The notes under the pieces: model-generated
The model's input: the letters and a program-made list of their open reading frames with translations, nothing else
The model's database searches: none
Told to the model about the DNA's origin: nothing
Made by a program: the position numbers and the translations under genes
Part shown: positions 5,465 to 55,501 of the stretch, one piece after another
Layout: every line of letters starts with the position of its first letter
Position numbering within the stretch: the stretch's first letter is position 1
Virus record (IMG/VR): IMGVR_UViG_3300028883_000032
Location: 62,001 to 126,000 of that record
Reading direction: 5' to 3' (one strand)
Length of the DNA: 64,000 bases

Positions 5465-6268
5465 ATGGTCAATCGCTATTATACAGACATTAATGCTTAT
5501 GATTTGCTTGATCCCAAGCATGAAAGGATACTAGCAACTCGTGCATTACTTGGTGACGACGCTGCAAGAGATGAACTAATAACATCAAATTTAAGATTTG
5601 TTGTATCTGTAGCTAAACAATATGTTAACCAAGGAATACCGCTGGAAGACCTAATTTCCGAAGGAAATTTGGGGCTTATAACTGCGGTAGAAAAATATGA
5701 CCCGACTAAGAATTATAAGTTTATTACTTATGCTTCTTACTGGATTAGACAAAGTATAATGAAAGCGATAGCGGAGCAGAACCGCACAATTCGTATTCCT
5801 ACGAATAAAGTGGCCCAGCTCTCAAAAGTTCGACAAGCCGAAGATCAGTTAGAGATGCAACTTGAACGTAAGCCAACTTTGGAAGAAGTTCAAGAGCACT
5901 TAGGAGATGATTTCGACGTAGCCTCTGTGGTTGAATACCAAGACAGGCCATTGGGCCTTAATGGATCAACTAATGAAGAACAAGATCTCATCGAAATGAT
6001 ACCAGACCCCAATTCTGAAAATCCGGATGAGTCCCTTCGTGAAACCATGTTTAATGAAGAACTTGGCGAAATAATGAGGGATTGTACAGAAAGAGAAAAA
6101 GATATACTCTATCTGTACTACGGTTTAGGCACGGGTGATAAAATGACATTGGAACAAATTGGATACCTACACGGCATTTGTCGCGAGCGTGTTCGACAGA
6201 TAAAGGCTAAAACAATTGATTTCATAAAGTCACACCCAAATTTAGATACACTAAAGGAGTTTCTATAA
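5465..6268 (+). CDS. RNA polymerase sigma70-family factor lacking region 1.1
   Basis: NLRFVVSVAKQY, DLISEGNLGL, FITYASYWIRQ, RTIRIP, TLEQIG..RERVRQI. Confidence 0.95.
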   Translation: MVNRYYTDINAYDLLDPKHERILATRALLGDDAARDELITSNLRFVVSVAKQYVNQGIPLEDLISEGNLGLITAVEKYDPTKNYKFITYASYWIRQSIMKAIAEQNRTIRIPTNKVAQLSKVRQAEDQLEMQLERKPTLEEVQEHLGDDFDVASVVEYQDRPLGLNGSTNEEQDLIEMIPDPNSENPDESLRETMFNEELGEIMRDCTEREKDILYLYYGLGTGDKMTLEQIGYLHGICRERVRQIKAKTIDFIKSHPNLDTLKEFL

Positions 6269-12843: not shown

Positions 12844-14427
12844 TTAGAAACCAACTGTAAAGCTGATTTTGTTAACAGGGAACTTTACCTCAACATCAAT
12901 ATTTGCGTATACGGTGTCATCTTCTGAGTAAAGTGTTACCAATGTAAATGAGTTGAGAACTCCTTCACGAACCAAATGCTTACCTACAGCAGTTATTGTT
13001 GTTGCCAATAGTTTCAAGAAGCTCGGACTAATAACGTTACGACCAATCAAACCGGATACAGAACTACGAAGGAATTTACCAGTATAATCCAGAGAAGCTC
13101 TAATTGAGTCCTCTTGACGCTTTGTGTCACTGCGATCTGTAGATAATTGGTGTCTTGTTACAATGGGAGCATTTTTAGTTACTTGGTACAGCCACCAAGT
13201 TCCCCCACCTGCCGCAGTATCTATCTGAGTTTCACTTAAGAAATCAGATGCATACTTAAGTCTTGCCGCACCGCTTAATGGTAAATTTGTGAGAGGCTGT
13301 TGTGGTGCAACTCCCGAACGGCGTCCAGCAGCCATTGCAGCGCCATAATAAGATGGTAATGGAATCAAAACATTGACAAAAAACTTATCACTGTCAATTA
13401 GTTGTTGGCGAACGGTTTCCGTAATTTCAGTATCTGCATATAAAATTGTACCGTCGCTAAGCGTAACACGTTCTTCCAATAAAGCGTTTAATGCCAACGA
13501 CCCATTAATATTATTTATATAGTTTGTTGTAAGTTGAGACACGTGCCATCTAACAGAAAAATATAAGGTGTCAGGGTATACCCAACGAGCACGTTCCTGT
13601 AAATTACTTATAGCCGCGGACTTTATATTTTGCATTGTCTTTGTTTTACCGCCTGAATCTACCAATGCTGCGGTTGTAGCGACATCGTCAGAATCTACCC
13701 ATGAGATGGTATTTCCGAAGAAAACTATACGCTCTTTCTTTGCCGCGGTTGCGCTCATGTTTACACAATGAGTTTGCCAAGTTCCACGTATAGTAGTATT
13801 AGTGGTGAGTGGTGCAAAGGCATAAGGTTCTGTTTGTAGTGCAAAAGCCTCCTGTGCCTCCTCGTGATCCGTGGCTGTTTGACCGTCAACACCATAGCCA
13901 TAGACTGCTTTACCAGCGTTATTTAGTGCCAGCCTTAATCCGAATGCTAGTGGGTTAAGAGGATCGATCTTACCACACCTGTTTGTCACATCATCCAAAC
14001 TTTCAAACAACACCACACTATTTACATTGGTGCGTAATTCACGCCAACCAATCAGTATTGATCCACCATCATAAGTACTTCCTAAAGAACCACTGATGGT
14101 TACATCGGTACCGTCTGGATTAACATAAAATTCTGTTGTATCCAAAGGTTTACGTGCGCCAAGAGTGCTAACAACGTCGACATAAACACTTTCTGTGTCC
14201 ACATTCGTACCATCACCAATAAGGCCCGAAAATGATACCGTAGTTCCAGTGGAATTATTGTAAGTATCTGGGTACGAATCCTTATATACAGAATCCGGAT
14301 TTTCTGTAATTTCGTGTACGTAGTAGCATTCACCAACAATCGCTGCTGGCAATAATGGAGTGTCAAGGTTAGGTGCCGCAGTCTTTTGAACGTAAGTTAC
14401 TTCGGAACCTGGTTTTGTGTAAGCCAT
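12844..14427 (-). CDS. Tail sheath protein
   Basis: MAY.KPG.EV N-terminus, HCVNMS...KERI, QPLTN, IVTRHQLSTD, VKFPVNKISFTV C-terminus. Confidence 0.88.
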   Translation of the reverse strand: MAYTKPGSEVTYVQKTAAPNLDTPLLPAAIVGECYYVHEITENPDSVYKDSYPDTYNNSTGTTVSFSGLIGDGTNVDTESVYVDVVSTLGARKPLDTTEFYVNPDGTDVTISGSLGSTYDGGSILIGWRELRTNVNSVVLFESLDDVTNRCGKIDPLNPLAFGLRLALNNAGKAVYGYGVDGQTATDHEEAQEAFALQTEPYAFAPLTTNTTIRGTWQTHCVNMSATAAKKERIVFFGNTISWVDSDDVATTAALVDSGGKTKTMQNIKSAAISNLQERARWVYPDTLYFSVRWHVSQLTTNYINNINGSLALNALLEERVTLSDGTILYADTEITETVRQQLIDSDKFFVNVLIPLPSYYGAAMAAGRRSGVAPQQPLTNLPLSGAARLKYASDFLSETQIDTAAGGGTWWLYQVTKNAPIVTRHQLSTDRSDTKRQEDSIRASLDYTGKFLRSSVSGLIGRNVISPSFLKLLATTITAVGKHLVREGVLNSFTLVTLYSEDDTVYANIDVEVKFPVNKISFTVGF

Positions 14428-15080: not shown

Positions 15081-16141
15081 TAATCAAAACTCGCTTCATT
15101 AGTAGTAGTTAGATCAAAAATAACATCGGCCAACACGTAGTATCCGTATATACCTCCCGGCAGAGCAAATTCAGTTTCTATACCATCAACGTCTAAAGTT
15201 GCAATAGTTTCATCTAGAGTTGTTGCATTAGTATAAGTAACTGACCAAGTTACCGTACCATTGGGAACGTACCCTCTTGTTTTGAAGCTGGCACTTTGTC
15301 CGGGTTTTGGCTCTGTACCGTCATCTGGGCCTGTGGTACTTACTAAACCACTAACCATAAAATATTCTGGAACCGGGGCAGTAGTAAATTCTAATAGTCC
15401 TGATGAATTTACTTCGTAGTCCTCGGTCTCTACAAGCGTTACCGTAAATTCTTGTTCGGTTCCAGTATCCACCCAACCACCAACTGTGTTCTGCCCTTCA
15501 ATATAGGACCACACGTTGTTTATATCCTGATCTTCAGGAAGGTGGTTAGCTGTATAACTTACAACTATTTTATTTTGTTTTGGCATTTTTTCGAGGCCAA
15601 TTTGCATCGAAAAATCTACCTGAATGGGTACTGCGACAAAAACTTCGCGTTCTCTATTGTGCAGTCGTGTTTCTTCGCCTACATTGATATTATGTATTTG
15701 ATGAACACCTGCTCTCCTAAACTCCTCTTTGAAAGAAGTAAGAGCATTTGATACTATATTAGCTAGTTCTTCTGCTTCTAATCCGTTTTGGGATATACAT
15801 GTAAGAGTAACAGAAGTTCTAATTAAATCAGTATAAGTTTTGTTATTAGTCTCCATGTTAAATGAAGCAAGCTGATTAATACAGGTCTGCATTAGTTGCA
15901 TTGGGCCACGTGATAATATAATGGCCGGTCTTGGGTCCATGTGACCAGTATTATACGAAAACTTATCTAATATAATTAGCGGGGTATTTGTAAAGTCCGA
16001 TCTCCAATAAAATCTTGGCTCTATTGATTCATAAGTACTAAACCAAGATTGCATAAAAGATAGAAATATCTTCTTTGCCTTTAATGAATAATTGCCTATT
16101 ACGCCTGCAAAGTAAGCAGGATTTTTGTTTATGGTGCTCAT
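15080..16141 (-). CDS. Putative tail terminator/completion protein with C-terminal Ig-like extension
   Basis: RPAIILSRG..YTDLIRTSVTLTCIS.NGLEAEELANIV; position next to sheath. Confidence 0.55.
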   Translation of the reverse strand: MSTINKNPAYFAGVIGNYSLKAKKIFLSFMQSWFSTYESIEPRFYWRSDFTNTPLIILDKFSYNTGHMDPRPAIILSRGPMQLMQTCINQLASFNMETNNKTYTDLIRTSVTLTCISQNGLEAEELANIVSNALTSFKEEFRRAGVHQIHNINVGEETRLHNREREVFVAVPIQVDFSMQIGLEKMPKQNKIVVSYTANHLPEDQDINNVWSYIEGQNTVGGWVDTGTEQEFTVTLVETEDYEVNSSGLLEFTTAPVPEYFMVSGLVSTTGPDDGTEPKPGQSASFKTRGYVPNGTVTWSVTYTNATTLDETIATLDVDGIETEFALPGGIYGYYVLADVIFDLTTTNEASFD

Positions 16142-16329
16142 AAAGCTTTCTCAATGGGAACTGTTTCTCCATTCAAACTCTTTGGTACTAGATTTAAATA
16201 ATCGTCAACGAATGAAGTCACCTCCTCCACAGGAGCATTTGGGTATTCTTCGATAAGCTTATTCTTCGCACCTATCCTTAAATTAATTTCTGTGCCAAAA
16301 ATGTTGATATTAAATTCTTTTATACGCAT
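16138..16329 (-). CDS. hypothetical protein
   Basis: First ORF after - strand promoter at 16343-16371. Confidence 0.6.
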   Translation of the reverse strand: MRIKEFNINIFGTEINLRIGAKNKLIEEYPNAPVEEVTSFVDDYLNLVPKSLNGETVPIEKAL

Positions 16330-16342
16330 GGCAATCTATATC

Positions 16343-16371
16343 AATATAAACTTATTTTCAAGGTTTGTCAA
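16343..16371 (-). promoter_or_regulatory. sigma70-like promoter TTGACA-N17-TATATT (copies also at 26282-26310, 29303-29330, 36507-36535, 48602-48631, 55680-55708)
   Basis: Six intergenic copies of CTTGACW with a 16-18 nt spacer and TATATT/TATACT, all upstream of - strand genes. Confidence 0.8.
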
Positions 16372-16378
16372 GTATTAC

Positions 16379-16388
16379 GGAATAAGAA
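16379..16388 (+). promoter_or_regulatory. Conserved GGHATAAGAW box, putative phage-specific promoter (also 17130, 39993-40002 on -, 40391, 40687, 41312, 41499, 42033, 43887, 44034, 48643, 49629, 54017, 56279)
   Basis: At least 14 copies found by eye, nearly all intergenic and each at the 5' end of an accessory gene or RNA island. Confidence 0.75.
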
Positions 16389-16391
16389 AGT

Positions 16392-16760
16392 ATGGTTAAC
16401 TTACTCGGGAGACGTAACATGTTTGCAAAGCTTGAAAGAGCACTCGGCATCAGTATTCATACTGATGATCTGCTTGAAATGGTGAAGCTCATTGAAGATG
16501 TTATCAACGATTCGGGTTACAAAACCAATTACGTTTTGTGCCTTATCAAGATTGGACGATACGTTGATACGCCATACGCCAACATTCTGGCAGCTTTTCA
16601 ATCAGTGCTTGGTGCATCAGATGCAGAGTTGATGGCTTTCGGCGATCTGCAAGCTCAACTGACGAAGCACGTCAAGACTGTCGTCTTAGACGACGTCTAC
16701 CTATGCAAGTACTGCAATTATGGTCTTGAACACCCATTCCCGTTACATAATCAAAATTAA
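16392..16760 (+). CDS. hypothetical island protein (likely start 16419)
   Basis: GGGAG SD; followed by terminator ACGGGCTTAAGCCCGT-TTTT. Confidence 0.7.
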   Translation: MVNLLGRRNMFAKLERALGISIHTDDLLEMVKLIEDVINDSGYKTNYVLCLIKIGRYVDTPYANILAAFQSVLGASDAELMAFGDLQAQLTKHVKTVVLDDVYLCKYCNYGLEHPFPLHNQN

Positions 16761-16783
16761 GATTACGGGCTTAAGCCCGTTTT

Positions 16784-17116
16784 TTAGTAGTCCTGTTTAC
16801 CGTTATTGTCACGTTCTGGGATATCTTTAATTGATCCCTTGCCATGACGTTTTTCATGGTCTTTAGCCATCTTCTTTGCAATACGCGGATGTGTTGCAAA
16901 CATATAACGTTGCTGGGCTTTTGACTCAAATCCAAGCTTTTTCAAAGATGTTTTTTTCTTCTTTTTAGAATGGGATAATCCGCATTCTCCATGTTTTTTA
17001 AAGTATTCCACCTGTTGTAACCTCTTTATTGCGTGTGATCTGTGTTCATATGGTCCGCCAAGATTTTTACCCAAGCGGGAAACAACATAGTAACCATCTT
17101 TTCTTTTAACTATCAT
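16784..17116 (-). CDS. Small basic two-module virion-type protein
   Basis: MIVKRKDGYYVVS..GKNLGGPY..AIKRLQQVEYFK plus FESKAQQRYMFATHPRIAK, both motifs familiar from phage small proteins. Confidence 0.7.
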   Translation of the reverse strand: MIVKRKDGYYVVSRLGKNLGGPYEHRSHAIKRLQQVEYFKKHGECGLSHSKKKKKTSLKKLGFESKAQQRYMFATHPRIAKKMAKDHEKRHGKGSIKDIPERDNNGKQDY

Positions 17117-17167
17117 AAAGCACCTTTATGGCATAAGATTGTGTAACCTAACTTTAGGAGAAGAATT

Positions 17168-17254
17168 ATGCCTCGTGGAGACGGAACGGGTCCTGACGGA
17201 AAAGGACCACGGACGGGCAGAGGTACGGGAACGTGCCCCCCAGTAAAAAAATAA
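17168..17254 (+). CDS. DUF5320-like micro-protein (28 aa, not in ORF track)
   Basis: AGGAG SD; MPRGDGTGPDGKGPRTGRGTGTCPPVKK matches the MPxGDGTGP..GP.TGRG.G.C pattern. Confidence 0.8.
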   Translation: MPRGDGTGPDGKGPRTGRGTGTCPPVKK

Positions 17255-17263
17255 CGGTATGAC

Positions 17264-17486
17264 AGGTCCACGTGTGTTAAGTCTCAGAAGGCAGAGCTGC
17301 CCTATCCTAGGAATTGGGGTGGAGCCGTGTGCACGGGATCCGGCTTTCGAGCCTTCGCGACCCCTACGAGTAGCGAAGGACAAGGCTCGCATCAAAACGC
17401 AGTGCAAATCCACGGACACTACAGTGGACTTATCGCCCCACGTTGGGGCAACCGCCAAACAAGGTACTTCGGTGCCTTGTTTTTTT
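17264..17486 (+). ncRNA. Structured ncRNA candidate, possibly 6S-like, with terminator
   Basis: GC-rich and ORF-poor; closing stem AGGTCCAC/GTGGACTT, inner stems CGAGCC/GGCTCG and CCTTCGC/GCGAAGG, cUUCGg terminator. Confidence 0.55.
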
Positions 17487-17946
17487 ACAGCAATGTCAAT
17501 AAAATATACAGCATGAAAGCAAATATAAAACCAATACTTACTGCCCCATTAAAGTCCCAATTCAACCAATCTGCAAAACTAAACCCATTTGAATACAGTA
17601 GTTCCTGTTTCCATGCAGGCTGCTTATTACCATATATATACCAAGGTTTCCAACCATCAAATACTTCCCACAGACCTCCTATTACCCAAGATGTCAAACA
17701 TGCTACTATTGGCATTAAAGCAGTTTGCCAATTAAATAAAAACCAGAATGCAGCGACTAAAACTAAAGCAATAAATAAACTGCCGAGTAGGTGCCATTTT
17801 CCATATTTTCCAATATTGGTCTCTTTAATAAAATTCCACTTAAACCCAAACCTGTTAGTACGCACAGCGTCTGGACCTTCGGGAAGACCATCTGTTGGAT
17901 ACCCAAAAAAATCTCTTGTTTTTTTAGTAAAATACAAATCCATCAT
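17485..17946 (-). CDS. Membrane protein
   Basis: Three hydrophobic segments. Confidence 0.65.
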   Translation of the reverse strand: MMDLYFTKKTRDFFGYPTDGLPEGPDAVRTNRFGFKWNFIKETNIGKYGKWHLLGSLFIALVLVAAFWFLFNWQTALMPIVACLTSWVIGGLWEVFDGWKPWYIYGNKQPAWKQELLYSNGFSFADWLNWDFNGAVSIGFIFAFMLYILLTLL

Positions 17947-18632
17947 CGCCCTATTTGCCTCAGAATGTGATGTATAGTTTCCGGTAGCTCTCCAAATTCA
18001 TGTTCTACCGCTTTATATGCAACATTTTTATCACTGTATCGTGGCATGCCTAGTCCCCACCTATATGCCTCTTTACGTTCAGAATCTAGTTTTCTATACA
18101 AATTAGCCACATCTTGTGCCTCTTCAAGAGTAGGACGTTTTTCAGCTTGTTCTACTTGTCTCCCCATTTCCCTAGTTAATAAATCTAAATATGGTTTATT
18201 TAACTCGTTAATACGCTCCTCAAATCCGACTGGGCGGTCGTCTGGCTTTTTTATCCATTTGTCATTGATGACATCATATCCCGCCATTAAAGCTTCTGTA
18301 TTTGCTCTGTCAATTTCCGGTAAAACAAAATAATTCACTGGATGCTTAGTCGTACCAAGCATATTTTTACCAGAGCGATTAAATGCCTTAGCTATTGCAC
18401 TATAATAGTCTACAGCATTTTTGTCACTAAGCTCAACCTGTACATCAATATCGCTCGTATCACTATAATAGTATCCCAAAATGGAGCCTATAACGGTGAT
18501 GCCTCTAATAAACTTTGGCGGTATTACACCGTATAAATCTTCTATTAACTCTACCCTTACGGATGGCCTTAATTTGTCATTAATAAAAACAGCGGGCGAA
18601 AGTACACTTTTCTTTTTATCAAAAATACTCAT
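17943..18632 (-). CDS. Pol-beta-superfamily nucleotidyltransferase
   Basis: IGSILGYYYSDTSDIDVQV (GS..DxD), HPVNYFV. Confidence 0.8.
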   Translation of the reverse strand: MSIFDKKKSVLSPAVFINDKLRPSVRVELIEDLYGVIPPKFIRGITVIGSILGYYYSDTSDIDVQVELSDKNAVDYYSAIAKAFNRSGKNMLGTTKHPVNYFVLPEIDRANTEALMAGYDVINDKWIKKPDDRPVGFEERINELNKPYLDLLTREMGRQVEQAEKRPTLEEAQDVANLYRKLDSERKEAYRWGLGMPRYSDKNVAYKAVEHEFGELPETIHHILRQIGR

Positions 18633-19981
18633 TAGCGTAGGGCTTCCAATACTTGGTTTATTTCATCTTGTTTACGTCTGCTCATGGACATTAAATACTG
18701 TCCAGAACTTACAGGGGCGTGCCCACTAAAAAACGATTTTGGTAAAGTAGAAACGTATGTTTTTACTTTTACTGTTTTTGACGGATCGTCTCCGCGACGT
18801 ATGCCGCGGGCGGCGGCTTGATCAAGGCGACTTTTATTCCAATGAGGTTCTACCAACTGAACCAAACTAGTCTTTGGTAAGTTCAGGCCTTCAGAACCGG
18901 CACCGCTATATAAGAATGCTTTAACCTTACCTGAGTTGTATTGCTTAATTTGATCTAACCTGTTTGGGCCGGACATTTCCCCTGTAAGTACAGAATGCTT
19001 TATACCCAAAGCCTTCAATCTTCTTGATAGCGGCTCTATTCCGGCTCCAATGTAGTTCGAATAAGCCAATACTTTGCCGCCTCTTGCTAATTCCTCTGTC
19101 ATGTCTTTAACAACTTTATCCAGTTTAGTTGATTCCGCTTTAGCGGGATTTTTTACGTATGGAGCTGTTGTATTACTTACCTGTCGTAACCCAGACATGA
19201 AAGCATTTAGACTAGGTCTCTCCTGCTTTGAAGGTGGTAAATTCTTCTCAATTTTATAACGCACACTACGAGGAATCTGTTTGTTTAAGTATTTGTATAG
19301 TTTTGCTTGTCTTGGACCCATCTCAACACTAACTATTTCGCGGGAACTGTGCGGTATCAAGCCTTTAAATTGCTGTGTTTTTGCCACGTGAACATACGGT
19401 TTAACAACGTTTTTTAAATATGCTCTATTTTTAAGTTGTTTAACATCCCCGGGTTTTACTCCAGTAATTCTTGCAAAAAACGGAACGCTCACCTTTTTGT
19501 CTTCAAAAAACATTTTGTTAAAGCGTTCTTTGTCCATAGGAACTAAAGGCTTATTGGCGGCCAAGTTAACTTGGGTCGCCAAATCTGAAGCTTCGTTGTA
19601 CATGGGCGTTGCGGACAGTAGCAATGCCTTACGGTATTTTTGTCTTTGTTTTAATATATTTGAAAATGCTTTTGTTTCGGGGTTACGTATATATTGAGAC
19701 TCATCTATAACTAGTGCATCTCCACCAGGCAACTTATTTCCTCTAGAGATGGCTGCAAAGGTTGATGTGGTACGAGAGGATTTAGTCCCAAAAGCTTTTT
19801 GCTCTTCTTGCTCAAAATTTTTCTTTAGCGAAGCCGTGCCAACAACGCTAGTCTTCCTACCTCTAGTAGCATTTAACGCTAAGCGGGTTTTACCAGAACC
19901 GGTTGGATGTACCACTAATAGGCCGGTCGGGGACTGGCGGTATTTCTTTAGTGCCTGTTCTTGTGGTGGTAACATTACCAC
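18632..19981 (-). CDS. SF2 (SNF2-like) helicase
   Basis: HPTGSGKT, VIDESQ, LSATP, GSEGLNL, QAAARGIRRG. Confidence 0.9.
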   Translation of the reverse strand: MVMLPPQEQALKKYRQSPTGLLVVHPTGSGKTRLALNATRGRKTSVVGTASLKKNFEQEEQKAFGTKSSRTTSTFAAISRGNKLPGGDALVIDESQYIRNPETKAFSNILKQRQKYRKALLLSATPMYNEASDLATQVNLAANKPLVPMDKERFNKMFFEDKKVSVPFFARITGVKPGDVKQLKNRAYLKNVVKPYVHVAKTQQFKGLIPHSSREIVSVEMGPRQAKLYKYLNKQIPRSVRYKIEKNLPPSKQERPSLNAFMSGLRQVSNTTAPYVKNPAKAESTKLDKVVKDMTEELARGGKVLAYSNYIGAGIEPLSRRLKALGIKHSVLTGEMSGPNRLDQIKQYNSGKVKAFLYSGAGSEGLNLPKTSLVQLVEPHWNKSRLDQAAARGIRRGDDPSKTVKVKTYVSTLPKSFFSGHAPVSSGQYLMSMSRRKQDEINQVLEALR

Positions 19982-21357
19982 ATCTCCCTGAAGCCCAAAA
20001 AGACTGGCATTCTAAATTTTTCGGTAGCAGGATAAAAGTCCTGATAAGACACTTTTATTAACTTACCTATGTACTGACCCGGATTATTAAAAAAGTCTCG
20101 TCTGAGGTCATCTGTGAGCCCTGAGCCTATACGTATGTTAGCGGGACCATCTTTTTTTAGACTAGCAATTATTCCGCCAACGGCTACTCCGTCATATTTA
20201 GAATTTTTGGCAGCAGGATAAAAGCCCCTTATATAAACTTCAGTGTCCTTGGCCATCTTCATCTTTGATGGTACTGGTGAATCTAAATCAAATTCAACAA
20301 TTCCTTCTGAAGTAAGGGGGTATCGTCCAGACTTAACATCTGATAACAACATTTGTTTGTCGCTCCAAGTTTGTGCCATTGGGGCTAGCTTAAGACCTGG
20401 AGTCAAATCTACTACTTCTTTTAAAAGGGGGAACTTGTCTCTATACGGCAAGTTTGCGACATTACGACCACGATAGGTATCAATGTCATAAATGATGTGA
20501 TCCAATCCGCCTTTTTCAGCTTGCAATTCGCGGGATTTCATTGTACTGGCATTAAGCATGCCTGACGTCTCATTGGACGCTAGCACCTTTCCAGTATTGT
20601 CTTTTGCAAACAATTCTCCACGCAATACCGTCTCATTACCAACTTCAGGCGGAGCAATATTACGATATAGCGATGTTTTAAACGTGTGGTCTATTAATGC
20701 GTTGTTGTCTTTGCGACTTACCCTATATGAATAAGTCTCTATGGGCTTATCTTTACGAAGTACAAACAAAGCGTGCGCACCATCAATTTTTGGAGACCAT
20801 ATTTTTGAGTCATCCATATAGTCCAATTTTGATAGTTCCTTCTCTTTGTACTTCGGCTTATAGGCAGGAACAGAGCGAGATAAGCGAGTAGGCGTGTGAT
20901 TGACCAACAACCAATTTTTCCCATCAAAAGCTTTGATCAGTGTATAACGCCCAGGAGTAGTGCTTTTATGTACAACAAACGACAACTTACCTGGCTCTGC
21001 CTTAACAACCTCTACCTTATCTCTAGCCTCCAAACTAACATTACCCTTACCATACCCACTCTCTATTTTACCTTCAAAATTCATGTAGTCAAGTGTGTGA
21101 GTAGGCTGATGGATAGCTAGAACTTTTTCCCCAGGTTTTGGTAGGTGTTGTATAACCCACGAATGAGCATGGCCTGTTTCCGGATCACCCAGCCGTAGAT
21201 CTTTATGTGGACCGGCAACTTCCGCCTCATGACTATGAACCGCAAATTCCCAAATAACAGGATCCTTTACTTTGGGAATATTTTGGAACTTATTTCTATC
21301 GGGAATGCCGGGAATTGTCTCACCATTTTTGATTAACAACAGTTCACGTAAATTCAT
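19975..21357 (-). CDS. LigD-type 3'-phosphoesterase fused to ATP-dependent DNA ligase
   Basis: PE motifs VHSH, PHKDLRL, HTLDY.NFEG; ligase PKIDG, RGELF, YDI, EGIV, OB fold IGSGL. Confidence 0.88.
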   Translation of the reverse strand: MNLRELLLIKNGETIPGIPDRNKFQNIPKVKDPVIWEFAVHSHEAEVAGPHKDLRLGDPETGHAHSWVIQHLPKPGEKVLAIHQPTHTLDYMNFEGKIESGYGKGNVSLEARDKVEVVKAEPGKLSFVVHKSTTPGRYTLIKAFDGKNWLLVNHTPTRLSRSVPAYKPKYKEKELSKLDYMDDSKIWSPKIDGAHALFVLRKDKPIETYSYRVSRKDNNALIDHTFKTSLYRNIAPPEVGNETVLRGELFAKDNTGKVLASNETSGMLNASTMKSRELQAEKGGLDHIIYDIDTYRGRNVANLPYRDKFPLLKEVVDLTPGLKLAPMAQTWSDKQMLLSDVKSGRYPLTSEGIVEFDLDSPVPSKMKMAKDTEVYIRGFYPAAKNSKYDGVAVGGIIASLKKDGPANIRIGSGLTDDLRRDFFNNPGQYIGKLIKVSYQDFYPATEKFRMPVFLGFREMW

Positions 21358-40432: not shown

Positions 40433-40693
40433 ATGTTCATGTTAATTGTTATAAACCTGATTGCCGTTTTTGGCTTAGTCGGGGGCTTACTGTTGCTGGT
40501 AAAGCATGAAGGAGAAGCTGTGGGCATTAAACAATGCCTTTCTGAATTAAATAATAAGTATACTGCTTTGGCGCGATTAAACGAAATCGCTCGTAAGCGG
40601 AAAACTATTAACGGTGTTATCTGGTTAAGCGGCGGCGTCTACCTATTCTTTCTCTATCATTTCATATTGGTTGTGCATAATTATCTGGCATAA
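40433..40693 (+). CDS. Small island membrane protein
   Basis: GGCATAAGAA box at 40391, GGGAGG SD, two TM segments. Confidence 0.75.
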   Translation: MFMLIVINLIAVFGLVGGLLLLVKHEGEAVGIKQCLSELNNKYTALARLNEIARKRKTINGVIWLSGGVYLFFLYHFILVVHNYLA

Positions 40694-40701
40694 GAATATA
40701 T

Positions 40702-40897
40702 GGTGATCTCGGACCTAGTCTTATGCACCGATCGCGCCTCGTGCCTGTTTTCCTTGGACGGGCCCAGGTAAAAAGTCACCCCGTGTATAACCGCATGGTT
40801 AGCCAAATCGGTGTAAGACAATGATCCGTGTTACCACACTTTTGGCGCTCTCGACGTTTTGGCTACGGCCAATCTGTCGGTTGCGTCAAATTTTTTT
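40702..40897 (+). ncRNA. Structured ncRNA candidate
   Basis: 13-bp WC stem 40718-40732/40807-40819, outer GGTGA/TTACC, 3' hairpin with UACG tetraloop and T7. Confidence 0.55.
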
Positions 40898-54063: not shown

Positions 54064-54588
54064 ATGGTATTGGCATTGCTTATTATTGGCGCCCTGCTCC
54101 TTCTGGGAGCGGGTATTGGTTTCAGTAAAGAGTTTCATAGATACGTGTCAACTATGATACTCCTAGGTGTCATGTTGGCCTCTGTGTATCTGGCCATTCT
54201 TGGTACCATTGCGTATCAAAAAGAGTCCCTGCTATCCATGAATGACAATACCGTGGAGGCCATCAAAGTAATAATAAATACCATACCACAAGACGCATAC
54301 ATTGATAGTTCTTTTGTTATTCATGTAGCTGAAGACTATCCTGATAATATCGCCGAGGCACTTCAAGCCGCGGTTCTTGAGTACAAAACTCGAGAAAAAA
54401 TACTTGATAAAATGGAATCACCAGTACCAATAATATTCCCTTGGATACTACCCTCAAGAAATAGTGCCTCTATAATTATACATAAAGGTGATGCTGATTT
54501 CAATGCTAACTCACCATCTATTCCCCCAACTCCACTAGAAAACGTAACACAAGATACATGTGGCAAGTTAGATCAAAGTTTCCGGTGA
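54064..54588 (+). CDS. Island membrane protein (two N-terminal TM helices)
   Basis: GGAATAAGAA box at 54017, AGGAGG SD. Confidence 0.75.
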   Translation: MVLALLIIGALLLLGAGIGFSKEFHRYVSTMILLGVMLASVYLAILGTIAYQKESLLSMNDNTVEAIKVIINTIPQDAYIDSSFVIHVAEDYPDNIAEALQAAVLEYKTREKILDKMESPVPIIFPWILPSRNSASIIIHKGDADFNANSPSIPPTPLENVTQDTCGKLDQSFR

Positions 54589-55150
54589 CTTCTGCCCCAA
54601 CCCTCTAGGGTTGGGGATAGGCCTCGGAGGTCCTCCCAGAAGCGTGTACCCCGATCCTTGGATTGGTCTCGCCAATTTAAGAGGCGGAAGATCGCCCAGA
54701 CACTGGGAAATGGGGTTAGAATCCCCGCTTGCCTCACCATCGGGAAGTAGCTCAGGTCCGTAAGAGCACCACCCAACGGGGGTGGAGGTCCTTGGTTCAA
54801 ATCCAAGCTTCCCGGCAATACCACCATCGTGGGTGAAAAGCCCACTACAACCAGCAGTATGGCACCGTGTGGAACTTAGTGAAGCAGGGTGTCATTAACA
54901 TACTAGTGTCGATGACGTGCCGATAAGCATGCAATGGTAGACCCCCTACCGTCTGTCATTGTGTGGAATAACGGTGACATCCTAATACCAGTTATAAAGC
55001 CAGCTGGGGCAACACTAGTAACGACTCCCAGACCACAATGGCCTTAATACTGATGCCGGACCAGATTCGGTGGTTGATCATCGAGGTCGCGCTACCACAG
55101 TTTAAGCCTCCCGGACGTGAGTCGACCGGGTGTGGGGTAGGAAAACTCCC
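54589..55150 (+). ncRNA. Large ornate structured RNA candidate with tRNA-like modules
   Basis: GC-rich, no credible ORF, more than 12 helices, crossing long-range pairings, complementary loops TACTAGTGT (54901) and ACACTAGTA (55012). Confidence 0.65.
54741..54815 (+). tRNA. Atypical tRNA-Pro-like element with aberrant anticodon loop CAACGGG
   Basis: CGGGAAG/CTTCCCG acceptor, GCTC/GAGC D stem, CCACC/GGTGG stem, CTTGG-TTCAAAT-CCAAG; lacks U33, D-loop GG and adjacent CCA. Confidence 0.6.
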
Positions 55151-55156
55151 ATGTTT

Positions 55157-55191
55157 CGCCCTCTTCGCACATTGTGCGGAAAGGGCGTTTT
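55157..55191 (+). terminator. Intrinsic terminator ending RNA island
   Basis: CGCCCT..TTCGCAC-ATT-GTGCGGAA..AGGGCG-TTTT. Confidence 0.75.
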
Positions 55192-55501
55192 ATTTAGCCC
55201 TAATTTTCCTTACTTCTTCTCGTACACGGTAGAATGTTAGTAGTTCTTCGTATTGTTCTGCGTCTACCCCGAGGAACTCTATAAGATTTTCTTGTGTTTC
55301 TGCCCACTCCAAGAGTTTTTGGGGAGTAATCTCGTCTCCACTAGGAGTACAGATGGGTATGGTTACAATGTCATCCCTGTCCCTATCTCTATACATCTTT
55401 AGAGCTTGTTCGACTACCCAACTTTTGGTTTGATAGTTGTCAGTAACCGAGTCTAACCAGTCACTTAAGCTATCACTTAATGTTATTGTGTGTCTAGCCA
55501 T
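55190..55501 (-). CDS. Ribbon-helix-helix DNA-binding protein
   Basis: MARHTITLSDSLSDWLDSV..TKSWVVEQAL. Confidence 0.7.
   Translation of the reverse strand: MARHTITLSDSLSDWLDSVTDNYQTKSWVVEQALKMYRDRDRDDIVTIPICTPSGDEITPQKLLEWAETQENLIEFLGVDAEQYEELLTFYRVREEVRKIRAK

Follow-up and report, generated by a model that had tools for sequence, protein, structure and literature searches.

A GC-rich, putatively structured RNA region behind a DUF5320-type micro-ORF in a marine sediment myovirus

Genomic setting and composition of the unit

The DNA analyzed in this study (64 kb, referred to below as the window) comprises bases 62001–126000 of a 206,856-bp IMG/VR virus record. The virus is a marine sediment myovirus, and CheckV classes the record as complete. 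The phage origin assumed in the preliminary description was borne out by this record and by the neighboring genes for the tail sheath (12844–14427, minus strand), an SNF2-type helicase (18632–19981, minus strand) and a LigD-type ligase (19975–21357, minus strand). The sequence could be located in one public run only, a DNA run from a marine sediment metagenome from which it probably came; among the public runs searched, none from RNA was found to contain the sequence of the unit described below. At the same time, Logan's own assembly of this DNA run, made independently, contained positions 15800–18800 in one contig with zero differences, so misassembly of the unit is excluded.

The unit lies on the plus strand and extends over approximately 340 nt, in which a promoter-like motif, a Shine-Dalgarno sequence, a micro-ORF, a GC-rich stretch with a predicted structure and a terminator follow one another without an internal promoter. 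It is flanked upstream by a divergent gene for a 110-aa protein (phrog_1375; 16784–17116, minus strand; ORF with a codon score of 0.28) and downstream by a convergent gene for a 153-aa membrane protein (17485–17946, minus strand; ORF with a codon score of 0.25), which closes the helicase/ligase operon of that strand and encodes a singleton with no relatives among 5.8 billion proteins. Note that the same minus-strand block contains a second small plus-strand unit (16379–16780), in which a promoter motif (16379) is followed by an ORF of 113 aa (start at 16419; codon score weak, at 0.03; no match to any family) and by a symmetric terminator at 16765–16780.

The promoter-like motif of the unit, TATGGCATAAGATTGTG (17127–17143, plus strand), is located 29 bases 5′ of the micro-ORF ATG, contains the core GGCATAAGA (17130–17138) and belongs to what appears to be the phage's own promoter class. 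The plus strand of the genome has 39 copies of GG[ACT]ATAAGA and the minus strand has one, where approximately 5 would be expected; the fuller form of the motif is (T-rich)-T-GG[ACT]ATAAGA-[AT], and the most over-represented 9-mer of the genome is GGAATAAGA. The copies are positioned 5′ of plus-strand genes, of the tmRNA gene and of other non-coding GC islands. Further sites are found, for example, at window positions 16379, 40391, 40687, 41312, 43887, 48643 and 54017. In eight loci of related phages, defined by a helicase 46–56% identical to that of the present phage, all 25 motif copies are on the equivalent strand, opposite to the helicase. Because the motif is strand-specific genome-wide and all 25 copies share one strand in the relatives, it is read here as the promoter of this phage clade. 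Since all elements of the unit form a single arrangement without an internal promoter, co-transcription of the micro-ORF with the downstream region, as the preliminary description had proposed, is the natural inference from the promoter, Shine-Dalgarno, ORF and terminator layout and is well supported by it.

The micro-ORF (17168–17254, plus strand) encodes the 28-aa peptide MPRGDGTGPDGKGPRTGRGTGTCPPVKK, ends with a TAA stop codon and is preceded by the Shine-Dalgarno sequence AGGAG (17156–17160, plus strand, read from the sequence), 7 nt 5′ of the ATG. Its codon score of 0.21 bits/codon is close to the mean of the genome's real genes (0.24; 5th percentile, 0.10; based on a sample of 2000 in-frame windows of such genes). 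The peptide matched the Pfam family DUF5320 (PF17253) with 34.4 bits against a cut-off of 27 (E 5e-8), residues 1–26 being aligned with profile positions 1–26 of 99, and it reached 47 bits with a profile made from 23 short homologues of phages. This was one of three DUF5320-type profiles, the other two being made from 34 long and 40 medium homologues, respectively. The earlier recognition of a DUF5320-like micro-peptide is thus confirmed by both scores. The Gly/Arg-rich middle and the C-terminal part of the full-length DUF5320 domain are missing, as the ORF ends at 28 aa. Translation through the TAA codon extended the DUF5320 alignment to position 52 with no gain in score (33.8 vs 34.4 bits), and the search for a remnant of a longer DUF5320 or zinc-ribbon paralogue gave nothing past residue 28 in any frame. 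Short phage forms with the signature MPRGDGTGP were found in 20 IMG/VR contigs (L008–L027) as ORFs of 23–67 aa. Because several of them share the ending of the micro-ORF, CPP followed by a basic tail, the 28-aa form is taken as full length for its class.

In these viral contigs and in metagenome contigs (L039–L118), the small proteins with MPRGDGTGP at the N-terminus fall into at least three size classes: Gly/Arg-rich proteins of approximately 100–130 aa, which are the classic DUF5320 proteins; proteins of approximately 65–82 aa with a CxCPxCG zinc-ribbon-like tail; and the phage-borne forms of 23–67 aa, usually encoded by the first gene of an operon. A DUF5320 protein is listed among candidates carrying an RG-rich quadruplex-binding motif in a computational survey (PMC7565180). 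No functional study of DUF5320 was found in the literature.

The frame of the micro-ORF is open for another 240 codons beyond the TAA (window 17168–17977, plus strand). Beyond the terminator, this frame is the antisense shadow of the 153-aa gene; its codon score there is 0.08, whereas the true frame reaches 0.25, so the extended frame is not regarded as a read-through product. Stop-codon recoding was likewise rejected: the stop of the micro-ORF is TAA, and reading TAG as sense lengthened ORFs in this genome no more than the TGA control did.

Composition and predicted fold of the GC-rich region

The unit coincides with a GC island (17152–17497) in which the GC fraction is 0.56–0.60, compared with a genome mean of 0.396 (sd 0.053); the tRNAs and tmRNA of the phage are likewise GC-rich in this 0.40-GC genome. 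Within the island, the domain at 17255–17454 (plus strand; approximately 200 nt, 58% GC), closed by CGGT (17255–58) and ACCG (17451–54), has the codon statistics of non-coding sequence. None of the six frames over 17255–17456 exceeded -0.03 bits/codon, which is below the 5th percentile of genes, and the translations of this segment matched no Pfam family and gave no signal with the three DUF5320-type profiles.

The ensemble fold was computed on 17147–17486, and the MFE, centroid and MEA structures were compared. The predicted fold is well defined, most helices having probabilities above 0.85. In this fold, the closing stem P1 is formed by a 5′ strand at 17264–17277 and a 3′ strand at 17416–17431 (both on the plus strand; pair probability 0.68–0.98), with AGGTCCAC (17264–17271) paired to GTGGACTT (17424–17431) at 0.87–0.98 and the helix extended by GT/AC and GTGT/ACAC (17272–17277/17416–17422). 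P1 closes a core of 168 nt (17264–17431). Together with the 200-nt domain, this agrees with the 6S-like size and closing stem noted earlier. Next to P1 is the purine-rich junction segment TAAGTCTCAGAA (17278–17289, plus strand; 12 nt), which is unpaired in all three structures and is followed by two small hairpins, GGCA-GAGC-TGCC (17290–17301; 0.54) and CTATCCTA-GGAAT-TGGGGTGG (17302–17322; three G.U pairs; 0.79). The predicted junction therefore has 47 nt on its 5′ side (the 12 single-stranded nucleotides and the two hairpins) and 0 nt on its 3′ side. The remainder of the core is a long irregular arm (17325–17415; pair probabilities 0.84–0.99) with helices at 17325–34/17402–15 and 17337–47/17382–93, an apical hairpin at 17352–61/17370–79 capped by a C-rich loop (17362–17369), and an A-rich internal loop (17394–17401). 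Outside the core, a further hairpin, GCCCCA-CGT-TGGGGC (17435–17449), is predicted at 0.94.

The unit ends with the intrinsic terminator AAACAAGGTAC-TTCG-GTGCCTTGTTT (17457–17486, plus strand), an 11-bp stem with a C(UUCG)G loop (pair probability 0.95) running into seven T residues at 17480–17486, as is required of a Rho-independent terminator; a simple terminator scanner did not list this hairpin. The terminator adjoins the stop codon of the convergent 153-aa gene and is considered to act mainly on the plus strand because only TTT follows the hairpin on the minus strand. The end-paired GC-rich element, the purine-rich unpaired segments and the cUUCGg terminator of the preliminary description were all present at the places it gave. 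Its two inner stems, GGAGCCG/CGGCTTT and CGAGCC/GGCTCG, are feasible but are not favored in the ensemble (probability under 0.2), where the preferred pairings are CCGTG 17325–29/CACGG 17411–15, GCTTT/AAGGC and CCTTCGC/GCGAAGG.

Compared with shuffled sequences, the region with its terminator folded with a z of -3.5. Once the terminator was removed, the values were -2.1 (17255–17456) and -1.7 (172-nt core), only modestly beyond the shuffles, and these overlap the range of +1.4 to -3.7 obtained for GC-rich coding islands of the same genome. The minus strand of 17255–17456 has the same folding energy (-76.0 kcal/mol), and the core gave -59.4 for the minus strand vs -61.1 for the plus strand. An 8-bp pairing between the ends of an approximately 200-nt GC-rich sequence is expected by chance.

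Relatives, known RNA families and other RNA units of the phage

No homologue of the unit was detected by blastn against 50,697 phage records or by exact 20–30-mers in viral, metagenome and genome collections. Likewise, no homologue of the RNA region was found by blast/nhmmer over the 20 viral and 80 metagenome loci encoding MPRGDGTGP peptides, or by a single-sequence covariance model (R1) over approximately 0.73 Mb of loci and five virus records; more distant relatives would escape searches of this kind. Because no homologue was found, the fold has no covariation support. Downstream of the MPRGDGTGP ORFs, a similar or GC-rich element was seen in none of the 20 viral and none of the 80 metagenome loci; in the 20 viral contigs, the micro-ORF homologue has no GC-rich tail, and a protein gene starts within a few bases 3′ of it. 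The eight helicase-relative loci (46–56% identity) share the promoter motif with the present phage, and both the micro-ORF and the RNA region are absent from them. The synteny search also gave nucleotidyltransferase relatives that are approximately 30% identical.

All 4227 Rfam families were compared by cmscan, at gathering thresholds for the whole window and at E<=10 for 17050–17600 (551 nt). At gathering thresholds, no family was found in the region of the unit, and at E<=10 only three chance-level matches were obtained, among them neither 6S, 6S-Flavo nor any other RNA polymerase-binding family. The 6S-like identity suggested earlier thus found no support in the covariance search with RF00013 and 6S-Flavo, at both settings, and the one-sided predicted junction speaks against it. 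6S RNA is an open-promoter mimic defined by a two-sided central bubble in a double-stranded rod. Because all 47 junction nucleotides lie on the 5′ side, no bubble of the open-promoter type is predicted here. The earlier caveat that the RNA may belong to another class proved to be the better part of that reading, whereas the 6S identity itself is not supported; no report of a phage-encoded 6S RNA was found in the literature.

Along with 6S, SRP, 5S, Y RNA, T-box, riboswitch and ribozyme families were rejected on the outcome of the same scan at E<=10. Some words of the region resemble 4.5S RNA by eye (CAGGUCC, AAGGCAGA and CGUGUGC.CGGGAU) and others 5S rRNA (CUCAGAAG and CGAGUAGCGAAGG), and these resemblances are taken as chance words in a GC-rich sequence because the covariance models give them no support. 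For Y RNA, additionally, no TROVE/Ro match was found in the phage genome (E<=1), although a Ro protein might be supplied by the host, and no Y RNA or YrlA family of Rfam scored. The unit had no covariance score for GOLLD or ROOL (E<=10); the positive control in a relative (L161) reached 174 bits for GOLLD. A mobile element, a MITE or a DGR template is considered unlikely because no second copy exists in the 207-kb genome, and no target-site duplication was seen. The best complementarity of the unit to the rest of the phage genome was 13–14 nt, which is the chance level.

The phage carries many RNA genes, every one of them on the plus strand. They comprise a tmRNA (111.8 bits; tag GETPVLKAA; genome 150804–151167), approximately 27 tRNAs, including one with the anticodon CUA (genome 4202–4275), and a group I intron (genome 9345–9604), these three positions being outside the window. 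A tRNA-like call with a four-base anticodon (genome 162777–162851, outside the window) was made by ARAGORN only. Inside the window, a second orphan RNA unit at 40697–40890 (plus strand) is better supported than the unit at 17255–17486: a promoter motif at 40687 precedes a closed multi-branch domain (approximately 140 nt), the terminator is a long hairpin followed by a T-run, the fold z is -5.7, and there is neither an ORF nor an Rfam match at E<=5. Approximately 600 nt of GC-rich non-coding sequence surround a tRNA-Arg(ACG) gene (window 54523–55206, plus strand; terminator near 55150–55190), its flanks having z values of -2.2 and -2.8 and matching no Rfam family besides tRNA. This tRNA gene (54741–54816) was absent from the whole-window Rfam scan at gathering thresholds, was found by ARAGORN and scored 50 bits when scanned alone, so its omission from the large scan looks like a filter loss. 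Further GC-rich stretches without long ORFs or Rfam matches lie outside the window at genome 37610–38040, 35560–35790 and 165640–166050, with fold z near zero to -1.5.

Among the relatives, L161 (helicase 53% identical) carries a GOLLD RNA (RF02032; L161 12550–13005, minus strand; 174.4 bits vs a gathering threshold of 150, E 6e-49). This GOLLD RNA lies approximately 1.2 kb from the helicase gene, on the opposite strand and with the same GGnATAAGA motif (L161 13394), and is the 3′ half of an approximately 800-nt non-coding unit ending in a terminator. A second non-coding unit of approximately 370 nt is situated upstream of it, and in another relative, L159, a non-coding unit of approximately 115 nt extends from promoter to terminator. 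The parallel with the GOLLD unit is loose and positional because the genes on either side of it have no homology to those around the present unit. The other RNA genes in this phage and its relatives raise the prior for the present unit being an RNA gene.

Interpretation and comparison with known systems

The best explanation of these data is that the RNA region represents the 3′ two-thirds of a self-contained accessory ("moron"-like) transcription unit of approximately 340 nt, and the candidate RNA part itself is, according to the folding model, most likely a folded 3′ domain outside the RNA classes known to date. Our most likely reading, held tentatively and at not quite an even chance, is that the transcript of an accessory phage micro-gene carries an orphan 3′ domain that is structured and non-coding. 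In the proposed scheme, the unit would be transcribed from the same promoter class as the phage tmRNA, and the micro-ORF in the 5′ part of the transcript would be translated. The compact 3′ domain would stop 3′-to-5′ exonucleases, so that the transcript or a processed 3′ fragment may accumulate as a stable RNA and act through exposed single strands on a protein or RNA partner. The segments proposed to be exposed are the junction 17278–17289, the C-rich apical loop and the A-rich internal loop, and a candidate partner is the basic, RG-rich micro-protein from the same transcript. Such a miniature ribonucleoprotein encoded on one transcript, in which the micro-protein would bind the RNA encoded downstream of it, is a prediction to which we assign a distinctly small probability. 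Several results weigh against the preferred reading: no homologue and hence no covariation supports it, the terminator-free z overlaps that of GC-rich coding islands and the minus strand folds about equally well, the sequence is present in one DNA run only, and a protein gene rather than an RNA follows the micro-ORF homologue in the 20 viral contigs.

The same data can be read with the downstream region acting purely in cis, as a 3′ UTR that stabilizes the short mRNA, insulates it from the convergent operon and includes a partly bidirectional terminator, with no function in trans. Stable 3′ structures protect short mRNAs, the micro-ORF is gene-like with a good Shine-Dalgarno sequence, and the unit stands head-to-head with the 153-aa gene, whose stop the terminator hairpin adjoins; but 200 nt of structure far exceed what protection needs, other plus-strand units of the phage have a single terminator hairpin, and micro-ORF homologues in other phages have no such tail. 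We consider this reading unlikely, although it deserves real weight. A similar, modest probability is given to a non-functional remnant, foreign DNA that came in with the micro-ORF and is now decaying; it could be what is left of a longer DUF5320 gene or of the protein gene which follows the micro-ORF elsewhere. Decay is conceivable because the 20 viral contigs have a protein gene, not an RNA, within a few bases of the micro-ORF, and the singleton status, the composition foreign to the genome, the modest folding z and the frame open past the TAA, along which the DUF5320 alignment can be stretched to position 52 with no gain in score, all agree with it. Phage genomes are compact and seldom retain 200 nt of junk, and here the promoter and a perfect terminator are intact, the 28-aa form with its CPP and basic tail is full length for its class, and no residual similarity to the long, zinc-ribbon or short DUF5320-type profiles remains past residue 28 in any frame, all of which speaks against decay.

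The remaining readings fare worse. A conditional terminator or riboswitch-like sensor gating antisense read-through past 17486 into the helicase/ligase operon would account for the fact that, downstream on the plus strand, there is nothing but sequence antisense to a long operon of the minus strand, and the repeated words TCCACG, CACGG and GAAGG (two copies each) would permit alternative pairings. The high probability of the terminator hairpin (0.95), the lack of a rival anti-terminator among the ensemble pairings, the failure of any riboswitch family to match at E<=10 and the lack of homologues in which a ligand pocket could be seen to be conserved make it very unlikely. For a 6S-like RNA that would sequester the host sigma-70 holoenzyme and so favor transcription by the phage sigma factor, the size (approximately 170–200 nt) and the closing stem formed by the ends are suitable; as supposed in the preliminary description, the phage does bring its own sigma, a sigma-70-family protein encoded at window 5465–6268, and it has its own promoter class. 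We nevertheless regard this reading as highly improbable, as neither RF00013 nor 6S-Flavo nor any other family matched at gathering thresholds or, beyond chance level, at E<=10. Moreover, the junction is predicted to lie on one side (47 vs 0 nt) with two hairpins inside, no long irregular double-stranded rod flanks a bubble on both sides, and no homologues were found in which conserved bubble features could be looked for. Finally, an 85-aa ORF (17259–17516) could be a translationally coupled second gene, its ATG being four bases past the micro-ORF stop, as for the genes trailing the micro-ORF in other phages. Its codon score of -0.11 bits/codon is below the 5th percentile of the 2000 gene windows (0.10), it has neither a Pfam match nor a Shine-Dalgarno sequence, and it crosses the terminator and enters the convergent gene by 32 nt, so a coding function is scarcely credible.

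Taken as a whole, the initial observation is partly confirmed and its interpretation partly supported. There is no support for a phage mimic of 6S RNA, although such a mimic would have been a notable finding. If the orphan 3′ domain is real and stable, it would be another unclassified structured RNA in an RNA-rich lineage of huge phages, physically linked to an uncharacterized DUF5320 signature peptide, and would thus offer a handle on both. If the RNA and the peptide did form a particle, it would be the first of a new phage class acting on host translation or transcription, in a lineage with a heavy investment in RNAs such as tmRNA, tRNAs and, in a relative, GOLLD. The unit is a single-sequence candidate that is useful chiefly for cloning, and it also points to the well-defined promoter class of this phage and to the stronger orphan RNA at window 40697–40890.

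In comparison with known systems, the micro-ORF shares with DUF5320 (PF17253) the N-terminal signature MPRGDGTGPxGxGPxTGRGxGxC, above the Pfam cut-off, while cellular members of the family have approximately 100–130 aa vs 28 aa here, and none of the short phage-borne forms in the 20 IMG/VR contigs has an RNA tail. Like 6S RNA (RF00013; 6S-Flavo, RF01685), which has approximately 180–200 nt, the candidate has a similar length, ends predicted to pair into a closing stem, a purine-rich unpaired segment, a standalone unit with its own terminator and a phage with its own sigma factor; unlike 6S, it has no covariance-model score, its predicted unpaired region is one-sided with two hairpins, and it is fused behind a micro-ORF. 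Y RNA and YrlA, which act with Ro (Rsr), likewise have a closing stem formed by the ends and containing GGUCC and a multi-branched distal part, but the candidate has no bulged-C helix and the phage has no Ro gene. GOLLD is approximately four times larger than the candidate RNA. Dual-function RNAs, such as RNAIII/hld of S. aureus, SgrS/SgrT of E. coli and SR1/SR1P of B. subtilis, combine a tiny ORF with a structured regulatory part. Although the unit has no sequence or structural homology to these RNAs and no target complementarity above chance, it would resemble them in joining, on one short transcript, a translated peptide of less than 50 aa, a structured non-coding portion and a terminator.
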